Assembly (NCBI RefSeq): GCF_000143415.4
Contig: NW_003314363.1
Location: 310,001 to 374,000 of the forward strand
Direction: 5' to 3'
Length of the DNA: 64,000 bases
Source of the DNA: Selaginella moellendorffii
Lineage: Eukaryota > Plantae > Lycopodiophyta
The position numbers and the translations under genes were made by a program. Position 1 is the stretch's first letter. Each line of letters opens with the position of its first letter. Positions 2,952 to 50,852 of this stretch are shown here, one piece after another. The notes under the pieces were generated by a model. It did not search any database, was not told the origin of the DNA, and was given only the letters and a program-made list of their open reading frames with translations.

Positions 2952-3441
2952 ATGGCGACAAGCTTCCAGGACGCGCCAGTCATTGTCCGCAATGCCGCCA
3001 ATGGGCGCAAGATTTTCATGGCCAAATGCTCAGACTGTCACGCAGTGGAGAGCGATGGCGGCCACAAGCTTGGTAAGGCCCAGCTGATCGATCGATTTTT
3101 GTCCTTGTAGTTTCGGAATTTACTGTGGCCCTTGATCTCGATCGGTTCCAGGCCCCAATCTCCACGGCTTGTTTGGAAGGCAAGCAGGGACCGCGCCAGG
3201 CTACGCATTCTCGCCGGCGAACAAGAACACGAAAGTAATCTGGGACGAGAGAGCGCTTTTCGACTACATTTTTGATCCGAACAAGGTACCACAGCCATTT
3301 TCTCTTGACGATAGCGCAATACTGGTCTGTTTCTCCTCCACTCCATCACAGTTCTTTCCAGGAACGAAAAAGCCCTATGATGGCCTCGCTTCCCCGCAGG
3401 AGAGAGTCGACCTGATCGCGTTTTTGAAAAGAGCGTGCTGA
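2952..3441 (+). CDS. Divergent mitochondrial-type cytochrome c (3 exons: 2952-3072, 3152-3285, 3352-3441)
   Basis: Spliced translation [114 protein letters not shown]. It has the CxxCH heme motif, GPNLxGLFGR and PGTK. Both GT-AG introns keep the frame. Confidence 0.92.
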
Positions 3442-3880
3442 CCGGCCGTAAATTTTCTGACTGCCTGTAGCCAGTTGCTGGAAGTTCTGAGAAGGGCTTG
3501 GCAATTCTGGCGGAATTTTCTTGACGATCCTCGTGTCCAAACGGGACATACCTATTTTGAGAGCGCTTTATCTCTTGAGGAACTTCATCGGTTTGCTTTT
3601 CGATTTTACTACTTCTTTTGTAGACTTTTACGACCTTTCGCACACACTGGATAATCTTATCTATGGTTTCGATTCCATTTATAATTAAAATGAAACACGC
3701 AAACTACTATAAATGTCACCATGTATGATCAACATATAGCTGGCTGGAACGTTGAAAAATCATAAACTGAGCTAAATTTCAATATTTACGTGTATAGTAA
3801 TGTAGTCGACGTAGAAATTTTGCATTCTAGCCGCAATGTGGAGTCATGTACTAGCTGAGTCGTCAAGATAAGCGTAGGAC

Positions 3881-4402: not shown

Positions 4403-4740
4403 ATCCTTTTGGATGATCAAACTATATCCATATGATGAAAGATGAATAACTGAGTGGTCTCCCATATGATCTCTCTCCTTGTGATGTTAATAAAAAATGT
4501 TTGGCACGTATGAACAGCGCCCAATGTCGCTGTTCTGATCAAATAAAATTTACTCACGGAAGTTGTGGGGCTTTAAGACAGACTGGAAAATTTTACTTGT
4601 ACAACTTTTTCTCAATTTGTATAATTAGAATACGACAAAGACAAATCGATTTATATTAAATAAAGGTATATTATTTCTAATAAATGAGAATTTCTTTCAC
4701 TTTAAAGTCTACGATCACTCCTTATTAATGTCCCGTTTCA

Positions 4741-5189
4741 TCAAGGTTTAAAATCATAAATGTAGTCGACATGGGCTTGCTGTTCCTGATCACCAGAGAT
4801 AGTTGACTGACAACACACGATCATGCATGTCAAGAATATTGTCTCAAATACAGGATTATTTTACCTCCGGTTCGGCAATTTTTCCGGTGGAATTGGAATC
4901 CAGCTGATTAGCAATCGTAGCCATCACTGTAAAAAGACAAAAAGATTCAATCACGTAAGAACCAGGTTACACGCTTGCATGCAAGCGAATGCAGGCATGG
5001 ACCATGATGTTTCAAAAGAAACACAGAGATCATCAAATCCAATCGAGTTAGAGATCGGCATATTCAATCGAGATTGGAGAACAGGGATTGTAAGAAACGG
5101 TACATACCTGTTTCATTCTTCACTGGCCGAGAGGTCACAGCAGCAGCCACCAAGAGGACGAAGAAGAAAAAACTTAGTGCGCGAGACAT
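4741..5189 (-). CDS. Phytosulfokine-like small secreted peptide precursor, 69 aa (exons 5189-5108, 4926-4865, 4806-4741)
   Basis: Hand-spliced: MSRALSFFFFVLLVAAAVTSRPVKNETVMATIANQLDSNSTGKIAEPESTISGDQEQQAHVDYIYDFKP*. Signal peptide followed by RP, canonical GT-AG introns (181 and 58 bp) with matching phases, C-terminal AHxDYIY as in PSK precursors, and a TATA-like motif near 5276-5282. Confidence 0.8.
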
Positions 5190-5462
5190 GATCTAGAGTT
5201 TCTCTTGCAAAGAAAATCTATCAAAGAGAGACAAAGAGCCAATCAATGATATGATCAGCGTTTGTGTTGATATCGTATATATGCTACCGAGAAAAGGTCA
5301 ACCACTGCAGAACGGCCACGTCGACATGCAAAGTGGCAGTTTTGACTGGATGGCTGGAAACCAGACTTCCAGTTAGCTTTCCCTCTCCGAAATTACTGGA
5401 ATTCACTCGCGAGAATTCTTTTCATCCTGCTCATTTTTATTAACTTTTGCACATTGAAATTT

Positions 5463-21529: not shown

Positions 21530-24458
21530 ATGGCGATGGAGATTGCCGCCACCGCCTCAAGAGGGCTACTCCAGTCCACCACCACAAGCAGCACCGGCAG
21601 CATTAGCGGTAGCAGTAGAGTTTTGGCTAGATTCTCCGAGGAGAAGCGGCTGATTGTCGACAAGCTCGAGCTTGGAGCGCTCCGGAAGCGATCGCTGCAG
21701 CTCAATTTGCGTAGGATTGCTCCGGCGCCGCGATGCCGAGTTGCCACAACCGAGGAATCAGTCCAAGGTGAGGAAGAACTTCTATTCTCTAGAGGATTTT
21801 CATCTCATAGTCTTTTCTTGTTTCCATCTAGTCAAGGACGCTCCAAAGAAGCTGGACTTGAGGACTGATATAAGGAACCTCGCCATCATCGCTCATGTCG
21901 ATCACGGCAAGACCACGCTGGTGGATGGAATGCTTCGACAATCCAAGGTAGAGCAGTTCGTTTTCTTTTCTTTCTTTTGCATATGGTTCTCCTTGCACGA
22001 GTGAAGGTTTTCCGGGACAACCAAACAGTCCAAGAGCGAATCATGGATTCCAATGATTTGGAAAGAGAGCGAGGGATTACAATTCTCAGCAAGAACACGG
22101 CCATCACGTACAAGGGGACGAAGATCAATATCATCGACACACCGGGTCACTCGGACTTTGGAGGAGAAGTGGAGCGTGTTCTTAACATGGTTGACGGTGT
22201 TCTTCTCCTCGTAAGAACTCTCTCTTCCATGCCAACTTGGAAGCAATCTAGAAACTTTGTCTCAAAGTTCTTTGTTTCTTTTAGGTGGACGCTGTGGAAG
22301 GTCCCATGCCACAAACGAGATTTGTTCTCAAGAAAGCTCTGGCGCTCGGCCATAGAGTTATTGTTGTTGTCAACAAGGTGGACAGGCCAGCAGCTCGGCC
22401 GGACTACGTTATCAACATGACTTTCGAGCTGTTCTTGGAGCTCGAGGCTTCTGACGAGCAAGTAAGCTCTCGGAGTGCAATGCTGTTTCCAATGGTTTCT
22501 TTGCTTTACAGTGTGACTTTCAAGTAATCTATGCGAGTGGCCTCAAAGGACAAGCTGGCCTGGAACCAGATGCTCTTGGGAACGACCTGGAGCCTCTTTT
22601 CGAGGCCGTTCTTCGTTGCATTCCTGAGCCCCGCGTGCAAATAGACGCCCCTCTCCAAATGCTTGTAAGTTCCTTGCCAAATGTTCTGTCGATATGGTTT
22701 GATTGTTTGATCGTTTCATGCTCCTCAGATAACCAACTTGGATTATGATGAGCACAAGGGACGCATTGGCATTGGAAGAGTGAACGCTGGCACATTAACC
22801 AAGGGCGAAGTCAAGGTATGTGATAGCTTTGGTGCTGTGCTTCTCTTTTGGAAGAAATCCCTCACTTCTTTCTCAGATTTGTAAGCCGGATGAAGCTGAC
22901 AGGGTTGGCAAAGTGAGCGAGATCTTTGTTTTTGAGAACTTTGCGAAAGTTCCAGCCGTTAAAGTCGTGGCTGGTGATATATGCGCTTTTGCTGGGATCA
23001 ACGATGTTATGGCAAGTAGCTTCACCGACTTAGAGTGCGAGAGATTCACGTTTCTTTCTTACTCCACAGATTGGAGAAACGGTGGCAGACAAGGCAAATG
23101 GCGTACCACTTCCTTCCATTAAAGTAGAGGAGCCCACGGTGAAGATGTCTTTTTCTGTGAACACTTCACCATTTTCCGGGCAAGAGGTTGTAAACTACTT
23201 TCACTTGCTTTCGTGTTTGTGAGGTGATTTATTTTTCTTGTCTTGGTTGCAGGGAAAGTTCGTTACCAGTAGGAATTTACGTGATCGGCTCTATCGCGAG
23301 CTTGAGAGAAACCTTGCGATGAAAGTAGAAGACGGCGAGACTGCTGAGACATTCATTGTCAGTGGAAGAGGCACACTTCACATAACAATTTTGATCGAAA
23401 ACATGTAAGTTCTTGCTTTGTTTTTCATATTTCTCATTCTTGTCGTGCAGGAGGAGAGAGGGGTACGAGTTCATGGTTGGTCCTCCCAGAGTAATCCATA
23501 AAGTGCTGAACGGAAAGAAACTCGAGCCTTACGAGGTACTTTGTTCTTCGCAAAAAATTCTTTCTGCTACTTACGAGCAAAGCACAAAAACTTGGATAGG
23601 ATGCTATTGTTGAAGTTCCCGAGCAGTACGTTGGAGCCGCAGTTGATCTTCTCGGCAAACGCCGTGGACAAATGCTCGACATGCAAGCCTCGGAGTAAGT
23701 GAAGTAGTTTAAAGCTTAAGTTTAAAGCTTACTAGTTCTCTGGTTGGTTCTCCAGACTTGGAAACACCATCTTAAAGTATAGGCTCCCGACCAGAGGCCT
23801 CTTGGGGATCCGAAACTCCCTCCTCTCCGCGAGCCGAGGCACGGCCATCCTCAACACTGTTTTCCACGGCTACGAAGAATTCGTTGGTGATATTAGCACC
23901 AGGGAACAAGGATCGCTGGTAAGCACCAGAATGCATGTTCCAAAGAAAAGTAGGAGGAACAATTCAACATCTTTTGCTAGCTAGTTCTTCCAGGCTTTTG
24001 TCAGCGAAGTCACCTCACTCTCACTGTGTTTCTTGCAGGTGGCCTTTGAGACTGGGCAAACAACATCCTACGCTCTTTGCAGCTGTCAAGAGCGAGGACA
24101 ACTCTTTCTGGATCCTGGTGTGGAAGTCTACAAAGGACAGATTGTTGGCATCCACCAGAGGCCAGGCGACCTTTCCATCAATGTCTGCAAGAAGAAAGCA
24201 GCCACCAATATCCGGTCCAACAAGGAGCAAACTGGTATTGTCCGATGTCCTCTTTGTATCCCTTTGTACTTCATCATCTTTTTGACTCGTTCTTCTTTCC
24301 CAACTTTTTTCTTTCTCGCAGTTGTGCTGGATGCACCACAAGACTTTAGCCTGGACGACTGCGTCGAGTACATTGAAGAGGACGAGCTGGTTGAAGTAAC
24401 TCCAGTGAGCGTGAGGATGTGCAAAAATCCCCGGATGGCCAGGCGAGGTGGCCGATGA
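21530..24458 (+). CDS. typA: Plastid TypA/BipA translational GTPase (SVR3-like), multi-exon
   Basis: Ser/Thr-rich transit peptide; [59 protein letters not shown] and ELVEVTP. One GC-AG intron (donor 23012). Confidence 0.96.
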
Positions 24459-38604: not shown

Positions 38605-39408
38605 CTTGGCGAGAAAAAGCGAGCTAAAAACCAGACCTTCGGAGGAGAAAAGGAGAGAACCGACACAGCTCGATCGAAGAGGAACCGTTCGTTTGATCCA
38701 CTCTTTTCTCTCCTCTCCTCTCTTCTCCCAGAGAGCCGAGACGCGAGGAACAAACAGGCCTGATAAGCACGAAACGGCAGTGAGAAGAATAAAAAATATA
38801 TATAGCGGAGACGAGCGTGGTGGGATCACCCAGCGTGGTGCCGGCTGCCTACACCACGCGAGCAGCTCCAAGAAAATATACACGCTACCTTATCTCGCGC
38901 AAAGTCAATGGCTCCTGCTCCAGAGAAAGCCGGCTCTTTTCAGCACTGTGTAGAGGCATTTCACCTCCGCAGAATCACCAGCGGTGTCATCCGAGAGCTC
39001 CGGACTCTTGCCTCAACGCAGATGGATAACGCTCACTTGTCCTCTTGCAGAGCTTTGATTCATTCTCTCCACCGCCCTTGCCGCTGTAGAGAGTAAGTCA
39101 GCCGCGAATAATATCCAAAAGAGCGGAGGTCACCGTAAATACGTTGTTCATTGTGACTTGTCCAGATGAGCTCGGATATTTCTGATATTTGTTTCCCCCC
39201 GTCGGGCGCCGGAACGAAAGCGAACGGGGATTACTCTGCGACGAGCGGGTGGCGAAATGGAAATTCTCTTGCATTGACAGGCCGGTCACTGAGTCCAACT
39301 ATAGCTGAAAGAACCAAAACGAAGAAGAAAAGTGGACAAAGAAAACTATTAAGTCTTGGCTTGTGTCTGTTTTATGCAGTGACTTTAGCGGGGTGGGAAT
39401 CTCCGGGT

Positions 39409-42021: not shown

Positions 42022-45000
42022 ATGGTGCTTCATCCGGGTTTGAATTGTTCGTGCTTTCCTACTACTTCATCGTCTTTCAGTGACTCAACTCAAGCTCCTG
42101 GCAGGTTCTCGCCGGCTCCGTCTTGTGTGTACGTGAATTCTCGTCCAGCAGTGAAGCAAGACAACCATAGCTCGAGTAGCTCGAGATTGGAAGCTGGCTT
42201 GGAGAGATATCCTCCTCTTCTGAGGCAATGCGGAGCAGCAAGAGATCTCTCGCAAGCCAGGCGGCTGCACGTAGAGATCATAGAGAACGGGCTAGACAGG
42301 GAGAGGTTTCTGGGAAATCTCTTGGTACAGGCTTATGGAAAGTGTGGAAGTCTCCAAGACGCTCGGACAGTCTTCGATGGCATGGTGGACAGGAATCTCT
42401 ACTCGTGGACACTGCTGATAGGAGCCTATGCCCAGAATGGGTTTCACAGGGAAGCACTGGACTTGTTCTGGGCGATGGACAGGCAGCCAGACAACGTTAC
42501 GTTCTTGACAGTACTGTGCTCTTGCTCGAGCTGCGGAGATGTTGCAGAAGGCCGAGCTCTTCACGAGAGGATACGATGCAGCAGATTTGAGCGAGACACG
42601 ATGGTGGGAAACGCACTCATCAGCATGTATGGCAAGTGCGACAGCTTGGTCGACGCCAGAAGCGTTTTCGAGTCGATGGACTGGCGGCAGAGAAATGTGG
42701 TGTCGTGGAATGCAATGATCGCAGCGTATGCCCAGAACGGGCATAGCACTGAAGCTCTGGTTTTGTACTGGAGGATGAACTTACAGGGGCTGGGGACGGA
42801 CCACGTTACGTTCGTCAGCGTTCTGGGTGCATGTTCTTCCTTGGCACAGGGCCGAGAGATTCACAACAGGGTGTTCTACTCTGGGCTGGATTCGTTTCAG
42901 TCGCTGGCCAATGCACTGGTGACGATGTACGCGAGGTTTGGGAGCGTTGGTGACGCGAAGAGGATGTTCCAGAGCTTACAGACGCGGGACGAGACATCGT
43001 GGAACGCAGTGATTCTAGCTCACTCTCAAAGCGGGGACTGGAGTGGTGCTCTTCGTATCTTCAAAGAGATGAAGTGTGACATGAAGCCAAACTCCACCAC
43101 TTACATCAACGTGATCTCTGGGTTCTCTACTCCAGAAGTGCTACCGGAAGGCAGGAAGATTCATGCTGAGATCGTCGCAAATGGTTTCGACTCGGACTTG
43201 GTGGTGGCCACGGCACTTATCAACATGTATGGGAAGTGTGGAAGTTCGCATGAGGCGAGGGAAGTGTTTGACAAGATGAAGAAGCGAGACATGGTCTCGT
43301 GGAACGTGATGATCGGGTGTTACGTCCAGAACGGGGACTTTCATGAGGCACTGGAACTTTATCAGAAGCTGGACATGGAAGGATTCAAGCGGACCAAAGC
43401 AACGTTCGTGAGCATTCTCGGCGCGTGCTCTAGCGTGAAAGCTCTAGCTCAAGGCAGGCTCGTTCATTCCCACATACTGGAGAGAGGCTTGGATTCGGAG
43501 GTTGCTGTGGCTACTGCTCTGGTAAACATGTACGCGAAGTGTGGGAGTCTGGAGGAGGCGCGGAAAGTTTTCAACGCCATGAAGAACAGGGACGCGGTTG
43601 CCTGGAGCACGCTGATAGGGGCATATGCAAGCAATGGATATGGGAAGGATGCACGCAGTCTCTACGAGGGAATGGTCAGGGAGGAACTCAAGCCGGACAA
43701 TGTCACCTTTATGAGCTTGCTTGGAGCTTGCTCGAGCTTCGAGGAGTGCTCCTGGGTGGACTCGGAGATTGTGAAGAACGGGTTTGGGAAAGACGCGGTG
43801 GTTGGAACTACGATGCTCAACACTTACGGGAAGCACGGGAGAGTCGAAGAGGCGAGGAAAGTATTCGACAGGCTGGGATCGCGCGACACCATCTGCTGGA
43901 ACGCCATGATCACGACTTACGTCCAAAACGGCTGTGCGGTGGCGGCCATGAAGATCTTCAGGGAGATGACCGGCGCCGCTGGCTTGAAGCCCGACGCCGT
44001 GACTTTCATCGCCGTGTTAGAGGCCTGCGCGAGCCTGGGCCGCCTCTCGGAAGTCAAGGCCCTCCACGCGCAGATATCCGAGAGCGAGCTGGAATCCAAC
44101 GTGGTGGTGACGAACACGCTGATCAACATGTACGCGCGCTGCGGGAGCCTGGAGGAGGCCGAGCGGCTGTTCGCGGCGGCCAAGGAGAAGACGGTGGTGT
44201 CCTGGACGGCGATGGTGGCGGCCTTCTCCCAGTATGGCCGCTACGCGGAGGCGCTGGACCTCTTCCAGGAGATGGACCTCGAGGGAGTGAAGCCGGACGA
44301 CGTGACTTACACGAGCATCCTGTTTGTGTGCACGCACGGCGGCAGCCTGGAGCAGGGGTGGCGCTACTTCACGGACATGGCGGAGCTCCACGGCCTGGCT
44401 CCAACGGCGGACCACTTCGCGGCGATGGTGGACCTGCTGGGACGATCCGGGCGGCTCTTCGACGCAAAGGAGCTGCTGGAGAGCATGCCGTTTGAGCCGG
44501 ACCCGGTGGCGTGGATGACGTTCCTGACGGCGTGCCGGATCCACGGGAAGCTGGAGCTGGGCGAAGCCGCGGCAGAGAGAGTCTACGAGCTGGATCCGTC
44601 GAGCACTGCTCCTTACATCGCCATGTCCAACATCTACGCGGCTCACGGGATGTGGGAAAAGGTGGCGAGCGTGAGGAAGAAGATGGAGGAGAGGGGGCTC
44701 AAGAAGCTGCCGGGGCTGAGCTTCATCGAGGTGGACGGGAAGCTCCACGAGTTTAGCTCCGGCGGGAAGTACCATCCCAGGACGGACGAGATCTGCGAGG
44801 AGCTCACGCGGCTCCACGGGCTGATGCGCGCGGCGGGCTACGTCCCGGACACCAAGGCGGTGCTTCACGACGTGAGCGAGGGGGAGAAGGAGACGATGCT
44901 GTTGTATCACAGCGAGAAGATGGCCATCGCGTTTGGGCTGGTGAGCTCGCGGGGGAGCGGCGAGCCCATCCGGGTGGTGAAGAACTTGCGGGTGTGCTCC

Positions 45001-45123
45001 GACTGCCACACCGCCACCAAGTTTATCGCCAGGATCGCTGGTCGGGATATCATCCTCCGGGATTGCAATCGATTCCACCGGTTTAGCAGCGATGGGAAGT
45101 GCTCGTGTGGGGATTACTGGTAG
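42022..45123 (+). CDS. PLS-class PPR protein with E1-E2-DYW deaminase domain (organellar C-to-U editing factor), single exon
   Basis: Repeated P-L-S triplets (VVSWNAMI, MYGKCGS), PG box (KKLPGLSFIEV), HSEK, CSDCH and terminal DYW. Confidence 0.97.
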   Translation: MVLHPGLNCSCFPTTSSSFSDSTQAPGRFSPAPSCVYVNSRPAVKQDNHSSSSSRLEAGLERYPPLLRQCGAARDLSQARRLHVEIIENGLDRERFLGNLLVQAYGKCGSLQDARTVFDGMVDRNLYSWTLLIGAYAQNGFHREALDLFWAMDRQPDNVTFLTVLCSCSSCGDVAEGRALHERIRCSRFERDTMVGNALISMYGKCDSLVDARSVFESMDWRQRNVVSWNAMIAAYAQNGHSTEALVLYWRMNLQGLGTDHVTFVSVLGACSSLAQGREIHNRVFYSGLDSFQSLANALVTMYARFGSVGDAKRMFQSLQTRDETSWNAVILAHSQSGDWSGALRIFKEMKCDMKPNSTTYINVISGFSTPEVLPEGRKIHAEIVANGFDSDLVVATALINMYGKCGSSHEAREVFDKMKKRDMVSWNVMIGCYVQNGDFHEALELYQKLDMEGFKRTKATFVSILGACSSVKALAQGRLVHSHILERGLDSEVAVATALVNMYAKCGSLEEARKVFNAMKNRDAVAWSTLIGAYASNGYGKDARSLYEGMVREELKPDNVTFMSLLGACSSFEECSWVDSEIVKNGFGKDAVVGTTMLNTYGKHGRVEEARKVFDRLGSRDTICWNAMITTYVQNGCAVAAMKIFREMTGAAGLKPDAVTFIAVLEACASLGRLSEVKALHAQISESELESNVVVTNTLINMYARCGSLEEAERLFAAAKEKTVVSWTAMVAAFSQYGRYAEALDLFQEMDLEGVKPDDVTYTSILFVCTHGGSLEQGWRYFTDMAELHGLAPTADHFAAMVDLLGRSGRLFDAKELLESMPFEPDPVAWMTFLTACRIHGKLELGEAAAERVYELDPSSTAPYIAMSNIYAAHGMWEKVASVRKKMEERGLKKLPGLSFIEVDGKLHEFSSGGKYHPRTDEICEELTRLHGLMRAAGYVPDTKAVLHDVSEGEKETMLLYHSEKMAIAFGLVSSRGSGEPIRVVKNLRVCSDCHTATKFIARIAGRDIILRDCNRFHRFSSDGKCSCGDYW

Positions 45124-45434
45124 AGAGAGAGAGAGTTCCAGCAGCAGCGGCGCCGCCCGCCCCGCCGCCATGGTGTGGAAGATATAGTACTTAATGCTGG
45201 TCGTGCTCGTGTTGTGAATCTCCCGTGGTGGCGATCGTTACCACCACCACCACCACCACCACCAACAGTAACACAAATTCATTTACAAAGAATTTTCTCT
45301 TTTTTTCTTGAATATTCTTTTAGCCAAGAAAAAGGAATACAAAAACTTTGAATGAATTTAGCATGATTGAGTTTTTACTTCGAGAAAAAGATAAAATGTC
45401 TTGCAAAAACTTTGAATGTCTCCACAAGCATTAT

Positions 45435-46436
45435 TTACATTGTCGCTATTGATGGGGCTGCGTTGTTGATTTTAATCCAAGCTGGCCTCAAATTTCCACT
45501 CGCAGTCGTCATTGTCAGGAGCACTCGCCTGGCTGTGTCCTCAGCCTTCTCTTGGAAATATGGCATCTTCAAGGCGTCTTGCGCCGAGATCCTCCTCGCC
45601 GGATCAATCGCTAGCATCCTCTTGAGCAGCTCCACCGCATCGGGGTCTTTAATTCCGCTCCTCGCGTCCTCGGCTTTCCACCGCGCCATCTTCTCCAAGA
45701 TCCTCTTGCGTGCTCGCTCTCGGCGCCTGTCTTGATAGCCCATGCCACAGCCATCGATGTCCAGCTTCTTGGCGAAATCAGCCACAAAGTAGTCGAGCGA
45801 GTCCCAGTCCTCCTCGTCGGTCACGTCAAAGGGATTGCTACCCAGGAGCATCTCCGCGAATATACACCCGGCGCCCCACACGTCGATTGCGGTGCCAAAG
45901 CTGGTGGCACCCTTGAGAAGCTCCGGAGCGTTGAACGTTAGGGTGCCGACCTTGTTCGACCAGGGGCGTGTCCGCAGCCTCCTCGCGGCAGCGAAGTCCG
46001 CCAGCTTCACCACAAGCTTATTCTTCTCTCCATCCCTTTTGACGAGAACGTTGCTCGTCTTGACGTCTTGGTGAACGATTCTGTGCGCGTGAATCCACGC
46101 CAGGCCCTCGAGGATCTGGCGCATCACGGCCCTGATGTCGTGCTCCCCAAGCTTGCGTGACAAGATCACATCGCTCAAACTCCCGTCCATGAGCTCCATC
46201 ACCATGAATGTCCCCTGGTTGTTGCAGGTCAACCCAAGAAGATTGACAACGTTGTCGTGCGCTACCTCTTCCAGGATCTCCGACTCGTTGATGATGGCAT
46301 CGTAAAGGTACTCGTGCTCGTACATCTTCTTCATGGCTACTTTGTCTCCAGTCTCTCGGTGGAACCCAACCCTCACCTCTCCGTCGCCTCCAGCGCCTAG
46401 CAACCTCGCGTCACTCGCCCACACATAGTCTGCCAT
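45435..46436 (-). CDS. Atypical CDK-like Ser/Thr protein kinase, copy 1, single exon
   Basis: LGAGGDG, VAMK, HQDVKTSN, ADFA, GT..FNAPE, IDVWGAGCIFAEML and RRISA.DAL.MPYF. Confidence 0.9.
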   Translation of the reverse strand: MADYVWASDARLLGAGGDGEVRVGFHRETGDKVAMKKMYEHEYLYDAIINESEILEEVAHDNVVNLLGLTCNNQGTFMVMELMDGSLSDVILSRKLGEHDIRAVMRQILEGLAWIHAHRIVHQDVKTSNVLVKRDGEKNKLVVKLADFAAARRLRTRPWSNKVGTLTFNAPELLKGATSFGTAIDVWGAGCIFAEMLLGSNPFDVTDEEDWDSLDYFVADFAKKLDIDGCGMGYQDRRRERARKRILEKMARWKAEDARSGIKDPDAVELLKRMLAIDPARRISAQDALKMPYFQEKAEDTARRVLLTMTTASGNLRPAWIKINNAAPSIATM

Positions 46437-47189
46437 CGCTCGAAAAAATGAATGGTTAGGAAAACCTAAAGGATTTGTTTTGCAGAAAAAGGCACCTAGC
46501 TTCAAGAAAAAGATGAGAAAAGGGAGTTTATTTTAATTACAAATGTAAAAAGAAAGGAAAAAAACTCTTTAAATCTTGCTGCGGGCAGCATATTCTCCTT
46601 GAGCTTCCTTGATCATGTCCAGCCCTACGTTGGGTGCGGTTGCAGAGGACCTGTCTGGGATCGTCAAGAGAGCACCATAACTACACACACACACACAAAA
46701 AAGTAAAGAAAAAAAGGATCAGAAAGCATATAAAAAGAAAATGTGCCAAGCTTTTTTGTTTCGGTTTTGGCTATTGAGGGCCGAGATGTAAAACGCCAAC
46801 GTTTATCTCAAAGAACCATGAGATCGCCCGGGTGCAAAAGGTTGAGGCGTGGTACTCCTGCAAAATCACAGCATATCTCTCACTTACACACACACACACA
46901 CACAAAGGAGAGATTTTAAGCTTGGTGATAAAAAGTGGTAGAAAAAAATGACCAAACAACTTAAAAGGTGCAAAGAGAAGAAAATGGCCAAAAGGTTTTT
47001 AGAATCTGACCATTTTTTTCTCTCATACTTTTACCCATCTTACCTTTTTCTATAATATAAAAAAGGTGGTGACAGAGATTTTTAAAAAAACATTGGAGTT
47101 CTTGATGAGTGTGAGAGTATTGAAGCTAAAAAAAGGTGGTGAAAATCGTGCAATGAGAAAAAAATCTGACTGGGGTAAAACTAATGTGG

Positions 47190-47485
47190 ATTAAAAAAAG
47201 CTGGGTGTTTGGTTTTTTAGGGCTCTTGACGATGACGTGAGAGAGAGCGAGAGAACGGGCGATCGACGATCGGCGCGGCGGCTGCGCGCGCGCGAGGAGA
47301 ATCCATCCATGTCATCAGAGCAGCAGCAGCAGCGGCTGGAGCGGGAGCGGCGACAAGGCAAGTAAGAAGAAGATGAGCAGCGGTGGCGCCATGGCGGCGG
47401 AAATGGGGATCCCCAGCGGCGCCCTGGAGCGCATCTTCGTCCGCCTGGACCGCGACGACGTAGCGCGCTCGTGCGCGGTGTGCCG
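47190..47485 (+). pseudogene. Truncated 5' copy of the F-box gene, joined to the PPR fragment
   Basis: Matches 50718-51058 but has a frame-shifting deletion after the first ATG (47309). The frame from ATG 47373 runs into the PPR sequence out of frame. Confidence 0.85.
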
Positions 47486-47502
47486 TGAAGATCTTCAGGG
47501 AG

Positions 47503-48658
47503 ATGACCGGCGCCGCTGGCTTGAAGCCCGACGCCGTGACTTTCATCGCCGTGTTGGAGGCCTGCGCGAGCCTGGGCCGCCTCTTGGAAGTCAAGGCCCT
47601 CCACGCGCAGATATCCGAGAGCGAGCTGGAATCCAACGTGGTGGTGACGAACACGCTGATCAACATGTACGCGCGCTGCGGGAGCCTGGAGGAGGCCGAG
47701 CGGCTGTTCGCGGCGGCCAAGGAGAAGACGGTGGTGTCCTGGACGGCGATGGTGGCGGCCTTCTCCCAGTATGGCCGCTACGCGGAGGCGCTGGACCTCT
47801 TCCAGGAGATGGACCTCGAGGGAGTGAAGCCGGACGACGTGACTTACACGAGCATCCTGTTTGTGTGCACGCACGGCGGCAGCCTGGAGCAGGGGTGGCG
47901 CTACTTCACGGACATGGCGGAGCTCCACGGCCTGGCTCCAACGGCGGACCACTTCGCGGCGATGGTGGACCTGCTGGGACGATCCGGGCGGCTCTTCGAC
48001 GCAAAGGAGCTGCTGGAGAGCATGCCGTTTGAGCCGGACCCGGTGGCGTGGATGACGTTCCTGACGGCGTGCCGGATCCACGGGAAGCTGGAGCTGGGCG
48101 AAGCCGCGGCAGAGAGAGTCTACGAGCTGGATCCGTCGAGCACTGCTTCTTACATCGCCATGTCCAACATCTACGCGGCTCACGGGATGTGGGAAAAGGT
48201 GGCGAGCGTGAGGAAGAAGATGGAGGAGAGGGGGCTCAAGAAGCTGCCGGGGCTGAGCTTCATCGAGGTGGACGGGAAGCTCCACGAGTTTAGCTCCGGC
48301 GGGAAGTACCATCCCAGGACCGACGAGATCTGCGAGGAGCTCACGCGGCTCCACGGGCTGATGCGCGCGGCGGGCTACGTCCCGGACACCAAGGCGGTGC
48401 TTCACGACGTGAGCGAGGGGGAGAAGGAGACGATGCTGTTGTATCACAGCGAGAAGATGGCCATCGCGTTTGGGCTGGTGAGCTCGCGGGGGAGCGGCGA
48501 GCCCATCCGGGTGGTGAAGAACTTGCGGGTGTGCTCCGACTGCCACACCGCCACCAAGTTTATCGCCAGGATCGCTGGTCGGGATATCATCGTGCGGGAT
48601 TGCAATCGATTCCACCTGTTTAGCAGCGATGGGAAGTGCTCGTGTGGGGATTACTGGT

Positions 48659-48660
<2 letters not shown>
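47503..48660 (+). CDS. N-terminally truncated PPR-E1-E2-DYW ORF (385 aa from the first in-frame ATG); functional status uncertain
   Basis: Intact frame with 4 aa differences from the parent; HSEK, CSDCH and DYW retained; no transit peptide. Confidence 0.55.

Positions 48661-48692
<32 letters not shown>
48658..48692 (+). repeat. (AG)n microsatellite right after the DYW stop, longer than in copy 1 (45122-45135)
   Basis: Visible directly in the sequence. Confidence 0.9.
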
Positions 48693-48983
48693 TTCCAGCA
48701 GCAGCGGCGCCGCCCGCCCCGCCGCCATGGTTTGGAAGATATAGTACTTAATGTTGGTCGTGCTCGTGTTGTGAATCTCCCGTGGTGGCGATCGTTACCA
48801 CCACCACCACCACAGTAACACAAGTGGTTCATCGTTTACAGAGGATTTTCTCTTTTTTCTTGGGAATACAAAAACTTTAAATGAATTTAGCATGATTGAG
48901 CTTTTATATGATTTACTTAGAGAAAGATAAAATGTTTTGCAAAAACTTTGAATGTATACACTCACAGTCTCCACAAACATTGT

Positions 48984-49985
48984 TTACATTGTCGCTATTG
49001 ATGGGGCTGCGTTGTTGATCTTAATCCAAGCTGGCCTCAAATTTCCACTCGCAGTCATCATTGTCGGGAGCACTCGCCTGGCTGTGTCCTCAGCCTTCTC
49101 TTGGAAATATGGCATCTTCAAGGCGTCTTGCGCCGAGATCCTCCTCGCTGGATCAATCGCCAGCATCCTCTTGAGCAGCTCCACCGCATCGGGGTCTTTA
49201 ATTCTGCTTCTCACGTCCTCGGCTTTCCACCGCGCCATCTTCTCCAAGATCCTCTCGCGTGCTCGCTCTCGGCACCAGTCTTGATAGCCCATGCCACAGC
49301 CATCGATGCCCAGCTTCTTGGCGAAATCAGCCACAAAACAGTCGAACGAGTCCCAGTCCTCCTCGTCGGTCACGTCAAAGGGATTGCTACCCAGGAGCAT
49401 CTCCGCGAATATACACCCGGCGCCCCACACGTCGATTGCGGTGCCAAAGCTGGTGGCACCCTTGAGAAGCTCCGGAGCGTTGAACGTTAGGGTGCCGACC
49501 TTGTTCGACCAGGGGCGTGTCCGCAGCCTCCTCGCGGCAGCGAAGTCCGCCAGCTTCACCACAAACTTATTCTTCTCTCCATCCCTTTTGACGAGAACGT
49601 TGCTCGTCTTGACGTCTTGGTGAACGACTCTGTGCGCGTGAATCCACGCCAGGCCCTCGAGGATCTGGCGCATCACGGCCCTGATGTCGTGCTCCCCAAG
49701 CTTGCGTGACGAGATCACATCGCCCAAACTCCCGTCCATGAGCTCCATCACCATGAACGTCCCCTGGTTGTTGCAGGTCAACCCAAGGAGATTGACGACG
49801 TTGTCGTGCGCTACCTCTTCCAGGATCTCCGACTCGTTGATGATGGCATCGTAAAGGTACTCGTGCTCGTACATCTTCTTCATGGCTACTTTGTCTCCAG
49901 TCTCTCGGTGGAACCCAACCCTCACCTCTCCGTCGCCTCCAGCGCCTAGCAACCTCGCGTCACTCGCCCACACATAGTCTGCCAT
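48984..49985 (-). CDS. Atypical CDK-like kinase, copy 2
   Basis: Intact ORF with 14 aa differences from copy 1. Confidence 0.85.
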   Translation of the reverse strand: MADYVWASDARLLGAGGDGEVRVGFHRETGDKVAMKKMYEHEYLYDAIINESEILEEVAHDNVVNLLGLTCNNQGTFMVMELMDGSLGDVISSRKLGEHDIRAVMRQILEGLAWIHAHRVVHQDVKTSNVLVKRDGEKNKFVVKLADFAAARRLRTRPWSNKVGTLTFNAPELLKGATSFGTAIDVWGAGCIFAEMLLGSNPFDVTDEEDWDSFDCFVADFAKKLGIDGCGMGYQDWCRERARERILEKMARWKAEDVRSRIKDPDAVELLKRMLAIDPARRISAQDALKMPYFQEKAEDTARRVLPTMMTASGNLRPAWIKINNAAPSIATM

Positions 49986-50852
49986 CGCTCGAAAAAATGA
50001 GTAGTTAGGAAAACCTAAAGGATTTGTTTTGCAGAAAAAGGCACCTAGCTTCAAGAAAAAGATGGAGAAAAGGGCATTTATTTTAATTACAAATGTAAAA
50101 ATAAAGGAAAAAAACTCTTTAAATCTTGCCTCCTTGAGCTTCCTTGATCATGTCCAGCCCTACGTTGGGTGCGGTTGCAGAGGACCTGTCTGGGATCGTC
50201 AAGAGAGCACCACCACTACACACACACACAAAAGAAAAGAAAAAGGATCAGAAAGCATAGAAAAAAAAACGTACCAAGCTTTTTTGTTTACCAGAATTCT
50301 TGGGTTTTGGCTATTGAGAGCCGAGATCAAAGAACCGTGAGATCGCCCGGGTGCAAAAGGTTGATGTGTGGTACTCCTGGAAAATCACAGCATATCCCTC
50401 ACTCACTCACACACACACACACACACACACGGAGAGATTTTAAGCTTGGTGATAAAAAGTGGTAGAAAAAAATGGCCAAACAGCTTAAAAGGTGCAAAGA
50501 GAAGAAAATGGCCAAAAGGTTTTTAGAATTTGATCACATCTTTTGTATACTTTTGTATACCATCTTACCTTTTTCTTTAATATAAAAAAGGTGGTGACAG
50601 AGATTAAAAAAAAAACATTGGAGTTCTTGATGAGTGAGAGAGAGAGGTGTGTGTGAAGCTAAAAAAAGGTGGTGAAAATCGTGCAATGAGAAAAAAAATC
50701 TGACTGGGGTAAAATTAATGTGGATTAAAAAACGCTGGGTGTTTGGAGAGGGAGGGTTTTTTAGGGTTCTTGACGATGACGTGAGAGAGAGCGAGCGAAC
50801 GGGCGATCGGCGATCGGCGCGGCGGCTGCGCGCGCGCGAGGCGAATCCATCC

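Follow-up and report, generated by a model that had tools for sequence, protein, structure and literature searches.

Gene structure

Between 4741 and 5189 on the minus strand, the window (the whole 64,000-nt stretch of Selaginella moellendorffii DNA analyzed here) contains a small mis-annotated three-exon gene that is transcribed and spliced, as judged from assembled contigs, and encodes a predicted secreted mini-protein resembling a divergent form of the plant growth hormone phytosulfokine (PSK). It is referred to below as the YIYDF gene. The three-exon splicing proposed in an earlier note on this DNA was reproduced. Of the 81 boundary combinations lying within 1 nt of the claimed exon ends, one has GT-AG at both introns, and this sole combination gives a minus-strand open reading frame of 69 aa ending QAHVDYIYDFKP (AHVDYIYDFKP).

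The coding part of exon 1 (5108..5189, 82 nt) ends in phase 1. Codons 1-20 (5189-5130) encode the predicted signal peptide and are followed by R21-P22 and five further codons. Intron 1 (4927..5107, 181 nt, GT..AG, phase 1) leads to exon 2 (4865..4926, 62 nt), which encodes a variable proregion, and intron 2 (4807..4864, 58 nt, GT..AG, phase 0) to the coding part of exon 3 with its TGA stop (4741..4806, 66 nt). Exon 3 carries A-H-V-D (residues 59-62, 4765..4776), a PSK-type pre-peptide motif in which Asp62 is predicted both to direct sulfation and to mark the cleavage site; the predicted mature pentapeptide Y-I-Y-D-F (residues 63-67, 4750..4764), with boundaries set by analogy with PSK; and a two-residue tail, K-P, with the stop (4741..4749). 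All of these features are on the minus strand. At the composition of the window, the AHxDYIY motif, searched for with a stop within 10 codons, has a chance expectation of ∼0.0002 per window for the motif alone. For a haploid genome, assumed by us to be 106 Mb, ∼0.09 such PSK-type motifs are expected before a signal-peptide exon or splice support is required.

The region upstream of the ATG (5190..5380, minus strand) is a possible 5′ UTR of at least 190 nt. It contains a 9-codon upstream ORF (5327-5298, minus strand), which overlaps an ABRE/G-box-like ACGTGGC element. The TATA-like motif of the earlier note is present as TATATA at 5281-5276, 87 nt upstream, and its role as a start-site element is doubtful: it is not supported as a start site because one transcript source (X2, below) carries a substitution at 5278 and has an exon-1 contig that reaches 5380.

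Transcript contigs

RNA-type contigs were taken from two runs, X1 and X2, which were guessed to be RNA and are not recorded as such. Both behave as RNA, since neighboring genes are spliced in the same runs; the contigs cannot tell strand, start or expression level. X1 has the same organism code as the DNA runs. A 151-nt X1 contig links exons 2 and 3 through the predicted joint 4865/4806 and has 0 differences to the window over 4711-4806, where the other haplotype deviates by five substitutions and a 4-nt deletion. The window allele, or an identical copy, is therefore transcribed.

The joint 5108/4926 was found in an X2 contig, and the X2 exon-1 contig (5108-5380) covers both the possible 5′ UTR and the upstream ORF. 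The X2 source (organism B) may be a close allele or a paralogue. Relative to the window allele it has Ala17Thr, a 12-nt in-frame insertion in exon 2 and an alternative in-frame acceptor for intron 2 (CAG at 4788-4786, minus strand), which lies 21 nt downstream, starts the exon at 4785 and is seen as the joint 4785/4865. The coding indels and the alternative acceptor of X2 all preserve the frame; its upstream region has an 11-nt deletion. The acceptor reads CAG in the window allele and CAC in the other haplotype (locus L001), so a 62-aa isoform is possible for some alleles only. The joint of intron 2 is thus seen in a contig identical to the window allele, and that of intron 1 in a contig of a close allele or paralogue.

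Precursor protein

The signal peptide, R-P start and acidic prodomain described earlier are borne out by a hydrophobic N-terminus, by R21-P22 and by a proregion pI of 4.5. Apart from the initial Met-Ser-Arg, residues 1-20 are hydrophobic (Kyte-Doolittle values up to 2.96), and a predicted cleavage pattern V-x-S (V-3/S-1), judged by eye from hydropathy, stands before R21. The 69-aa precursor has no Cys, no RR or KR and two N-glycosylation sequons. Asp-Phe at positions 4-5 of the pentapeptide and the lack of a Cys pair and of a dibasic site were confirmed in the spliced ORF. The product is a short precursor and is probably disordered.

Annotation and haplotypes

A word-seeded protein search with the 69-aa product returned a single relative, SELMODRAFT_409681 of S. 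moellendorffii. This JGI model belongs to locus L001, which is the other haplotype of the same region (∼97.7% identity over 9 kb). The gene had been called hidden, and this holds for exon 3, which is unannotated; exons 1-2 are already in the model, which has the same exon 1, uses intron 1, skips the motif exon and splices instead into sequence antisense to a CVNH gene. The 113-aa model is not accepted as the main product, because its third exon runs antisense to the CVNH gene, its joint appears in no contig, and in X1 exon 2 is instead spliced to the exon with DYIY.

In the L001 haplotype the frame is open, all four splice sites are intact, the pentapeptide is identical and the protein ends AHVDYIYDFNP. 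The tail is thus N-P there, and Asn in place of Lys68 argues against the fixed -K-P extension suggested by the earlier note. Six coding differences separate the haplotypes, four nonsynonymous (G42A, E48G, Q55H, K68N) and two synonymous. This 4:2 ratio is compatible with neutrality, and selection is not demonstrable from two haplotypes. Residues 57-67 are unchanged, which is weak evidence as only ∼0.96 changes are expected there.

The upstream neighbor is a purple acid phosphatase gene on the same strand, with its stop ∼275 nt before the ATG; downstream lie the CVNH gene and a cytochrome c gene, both convergent. The window holds no paralogue of the YIYDF gene; a signal-peptide-like match at 39347 has neither a start codon nor a motif exon.

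Comparison with phytosulfokine precursors

PSK precursors were retrieved with two PSK sequences as search seeds. The 178 sequences obtained are the basis of the counts below, which refer to returned database sequences only, all angiosperm where named. AH[LTIV]D is present in 165/178, and A59-H60-V61-D62 conforms to it. Y[IV]YTQ is present in 177/178 and the Cys pair with the dibasic site in 176/178; the YIYDF gene has none of these. Its pentapeptide also departs from the wider pattern Y[IV]YT[QN] of the PSK types described (PMC10796568). A terminal Pro is found in 142/178, mostly as KP or NP. The C-terminal tail is 2 residues in the YIYDF gene versus 4 in 163/177 PSKs. Its precursor length of 69 aa (62 with the alternative acceptor) compares with ∼70 aa for the shortest retrieved PSKs and with a published range of 80-120 aa (PMC10796568).

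The Pfam search recommended by the earlier note gave a divided answer. PSK (PF06404) was the sole family to match, and it did so on the motif (residues 58-65, E 0.97), with 11 bits versus a cut-off of 25. With our own profiles, one built from 74 PSKs and one from most of the 178, the YIYDF protein ranked first among 6,800 shuffled and six-frame null sequences; these matches are weak (E 0.04 and 0.24) and miss the Thr-Gln. Since the pentapeptide, Cys/dibasic and Pfam cut-off tests fail, the gene was filed as a PSK-related variant and not as a PF06404 member. Alignment with PSKs keeps R21, G-D-x-E, A-H-x-D-Y-I-Y and the terminal K-P, with a gap in the YIYDF protein where PSKs carry the second Cys and RR.

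The closest gene structures were those of the PSK6/At3g44735 clade. There, too, a signal peptide is followed by Arg, an acidic proregion, AHxD-Y-I-Y near the C-terminus and a short Pro-ended tail. Intron phases are 1 then 0 in 4/4 genes compared (Arabidopsis, Magnolia, Aquilegia, Dioscorea), as in the YIYDF gene, and the middle exon is 50-77 nt versus 62 nt. In two of the four, Magnolia and Aquilegia, intron 1 has exactly the same offset as in the YIYDF gene, seven codons from the propeptide Arg. The position of intron 2 is not exactly alignable, and the distance from it to the first Tyr differs, at 26-27 residues in the clade and 14 here. By our own estimate from typical plant phase frequencies, the 1/0 pair has a chance probability of ∼1 in eight. 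Phase-1 introns after signal peptides are common. The shared phases and offset support PSK homology, short of proof, and on these sequence comparisons the YIYDF gene probably descends from a PSK.

Other known systems resemble the gene in part. PSK3/4-clade propeptides begin R-P and include AHVD variants (7/74). The four PSK3/4 genes differ in having two exons with a single phase-0 intron, and the clade has the canonical pentapeptide, the Cys pair and the RR site. Putative bryophyte PSKs (Marchantia YIYTSQ and Physcomitrium, compared by description; PMC8462819) share a non-canonical PSK-like motif in a non-seed plant, but they lack the Asp before Tyr and, in Marchantia, keep Thr4, whereas the YIYDF gene keeps the Asp and has changed position 4. 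The nematode PSK-theta mimic DYIYDN (PMC13081851, preprint) shares the D-Y-I-Y-D core with Asp4, a signal peptide and a variable proregion; unlike the YIYDF product, it is an animal effector of root-knot nematodes with Asn at position 5, and the likeness is presumably convergent. PSY, RGF/GLV/CLEL and CIF/TWS1 are likewise secreted precursors that carry a DY sulfation site close to their C-terminus, but mature PSY, RGF and CIF peptides have 13-21 residues with Pro/His/Asn motifs (Table 1, PMC8462819), whereas only I-Y-D-F-K-P follows the D-Y here. Membership of the PSY, RGF or CIF families was rejected on these six residues after DY and on the lack of any Pfam match except PSK.

Searches for relatives and literature

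HMMER (1.84 billion representatives) and ESM Atlas searches returned nothing; these are weak blanks, the query having been a 30-residue unspliced C-terminal piece with 9 intron-encoded residues. Two pattern scans of metagenome DNA gave 0 and 7 matches. Six of the seven were examined and rejected as relatives: each sits within a longer, unrelated ORF that continues well past the motif, and their number is about what chance predicts. The seventh, L012, carries a human-gut metagenome label and is not taken for human DNA. Metagenome contigs L008 (170-193) and L009 (26-49) carry a tandem 9-residue repeat (GTAHVxxIx), one unit of which reads AHVDYIYD; it is unrelated to the plant gene.

The suggestion that the gene is lineage-specific fits these results, no homologue having been found outside S. 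moellendorffii in the searches made. That it is early-diverging is unsupported, as the putative Marchantia PSK retains Thr4. As Thr4 is common to a bryophyte and to seed plants, the simplest reading is that Asp4 is a derived state of the Selaginella line.

According to two reviews, PSK is confined to seed plants (PMC10796568, PMC13074997). A survey lists PSK-like genes for moss and liverwort; its text names none from a lycophyte (PMC8462819). YIYDF or DYIYD was found in no plant paper, and no statement on a Selaginella PSKR was found, in the literature searched, which excluded most subscription journals. A 2026 preprint on nematode PSK mimics describes the theta class, DYIYDN, and states that plant PSKs lack the Thr-to-Asp change (PMC13081851). 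Asp4 has so far been reported only in nematode PSK mimics.

Proposed function and alternatives

The gene is real and expressed and, on these comparisons, a probable divergent PSK homologue. By analogy with PSK, we lean, with little better than even confidence, towards a functional, derived homologue of PSK precursors that would work as PSK does, with sYIsYDF as its mature form and perception of the PSKR type. The precursor would enter the secretory pathway and be cut after Ser20. Golgi TPST would sulfate Tyr63, which follows Asp62, and probably Tyr65 as well. Cleavage after Asp62 by an apoplastic subtilase specific for Asp, and trimming of the tail, would then leave sY-I-sY-D-F. By binding to a PSKR-type receptor kinase (LRR-X, with an island domain) that acts with a SERK co-receptor, this peptide would promote cell proliferation or expansion. 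Both TPST sulfation and SlPhyt2 cleavage depend on Asp at −1, and when an Asp comes after the peptide, SBT3.8 cuts in front of it (both PMC10796568); a TPST gene has been reported in S. moellendorffii (PMC8462819). In the lycophyte lineage the Cys pair and dibasic site would have disappeared and Thr4-Gln5 would have become Asp-Phe, and because of that change the receptor pocket is expected to have changed too. In PSKR1 the sulfates are held by Lys508 and Asn424, and residue 5 is contacted by Arg300, Asn346 and Phe506 (PMC11211552). Against a PSK-like product, Asp4 could itself be a cut site for Asp-specific subtilases. A bolder form, in which an expanded Asp4 sulfopeptide family without the Cys/dibasic module, perceived by a receptor of altered specificity, has replaced canonical PSK in Selaginella, is held only tentatively and is doubtful.

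It is rather unlikely, though the best placed of the alternatives, that a PSK-derived gene yields no PSK-type pentapeptide, its mature product being an 8-mer D-sY-I-sY-D-F-x-P or sYIsYD and its receptor no PSKR orthologue. Such an 8-mer would begin with DY as PSY, RGF and CIF do, and the short tail and the missing dibasic site and Cys pair fit it. Asp66 offers another subtilase site given the SBT3.8 and SlPhyt2 specificities, and Phe5 or an extension may misfit the residue-5 contacts of PSKR1 (PMC11211552). However, AHxD matches the PSK form exactly, and in PSKs the cut comes after it; PSK tails that get removed usually end in Pro, and residue 68 differs between haplotypes.

We regard it as improbable that this copy arose by duplication within a PSK-like family and is now decaying, weakly expressed and without a function of its own. 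The 4:2 haplotype differences, the loss of conserved PSK elements and a contig depth of 5 to 19 (contig depth being a poor measure) would agree with decay, and with the ATG so close behind the phosphatase stop the transcript could be read-through. Yet the frame and four splice sites are intact in both haplotypes, indels are in frame, and residues 57-67 are unchanged, a weak point as given above. As to read-through, summed depth suggests that 5381-5413 is bridged by no contig, and an AATAAA at 5441 would end the phosphatase mRNA.

Least probable, and in our view very unlikely, is an unrelated Selaginella secreted peptide that is PSK-like by convergence or chance, with a core that might derive from the adjacent cytochrome c paralogue: profile scores are sub-threshold, the motif can converge, as in nematodes, whose DYIYTQ and DYIYDN have no known origin in plant genes (PMC13081851), and exon 3 matches the cytochrome c gene at 21/25 nt, a level reached by 2/3000 random 66-mers, but this match is post hoc and weak at 20 nt (58/3000), its mismatches (His60, Val61, Tyr65) are PSK-consensus positions, and convergence would have to account as well for the RP start, the phases of both introns, the offset of intron 1 and the terminal Pro.

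If the YIYDF gene is a PSK homologue, it contradicts the claimed absence of a Thr-to-Asp change from plant PSKs (PMC13081851). A spliced lycophyte gene with the exon structure of a PSK fills the gap left by the reviews and the survey cited above and suggests that PSK signaling is older than seed plants. The plant PSKs described do not vary at position 4, and a five-residue peptide with Asp4-Phe5 therefore offers a cheap and direct test of ligand-receptor co-evolution. Were an Asp4 family to exist as outlined, its peptides and their receptor would form a naturally occurring pair orthogonal to PSK-PSKR of seed plants, and plants would have their own counterpart of the nematode DYIYD mimics. The locus also illustrates why such genes get missed, annotation having skipped the one exon that bears the motif.

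Neighboring genes

The CVNH-domain gene (3972 to ∼4420, plus strand) encodes a secreted product and has an X2 contig depth >100,000 with many variant contigs, which suggests a highly expressed multi-copy lectin family. It is missing from the JGI calls in L001, where the JGI model of the YIYDF gene runs antisense into it.

The cytochrome c gene (2952-3441, plus strand) is a divergent paralogue that is spliced and expressed, with both introns joined in X1 and CxxCH intact. It has GTKKPY where canonical proteins presumably have GTKM, which we take to mean that the Met80 ligand is replaced. Its codons ALFDYIFD (3252-3276, plus strand) and the exon-3 codons AHVDYIYD (4753-4777, minus strand) are inverted, in frame and 1.5 kb apart; the likeness is probably chance. 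An exact 12-mer of exon 3 is present at 3799-3810.

Elsewhere in the window, the translation of ∼21900-22400 (plus strand) reads like an exon of what we take to be a TypA/BipA-type translational GTPase. A DYW-type PPR gene (plus strand) and a protein kinase gene (minus strand) are tandemly duplicated at 42022-46505 and 47485-50054, the second PPR ORF being shorter.
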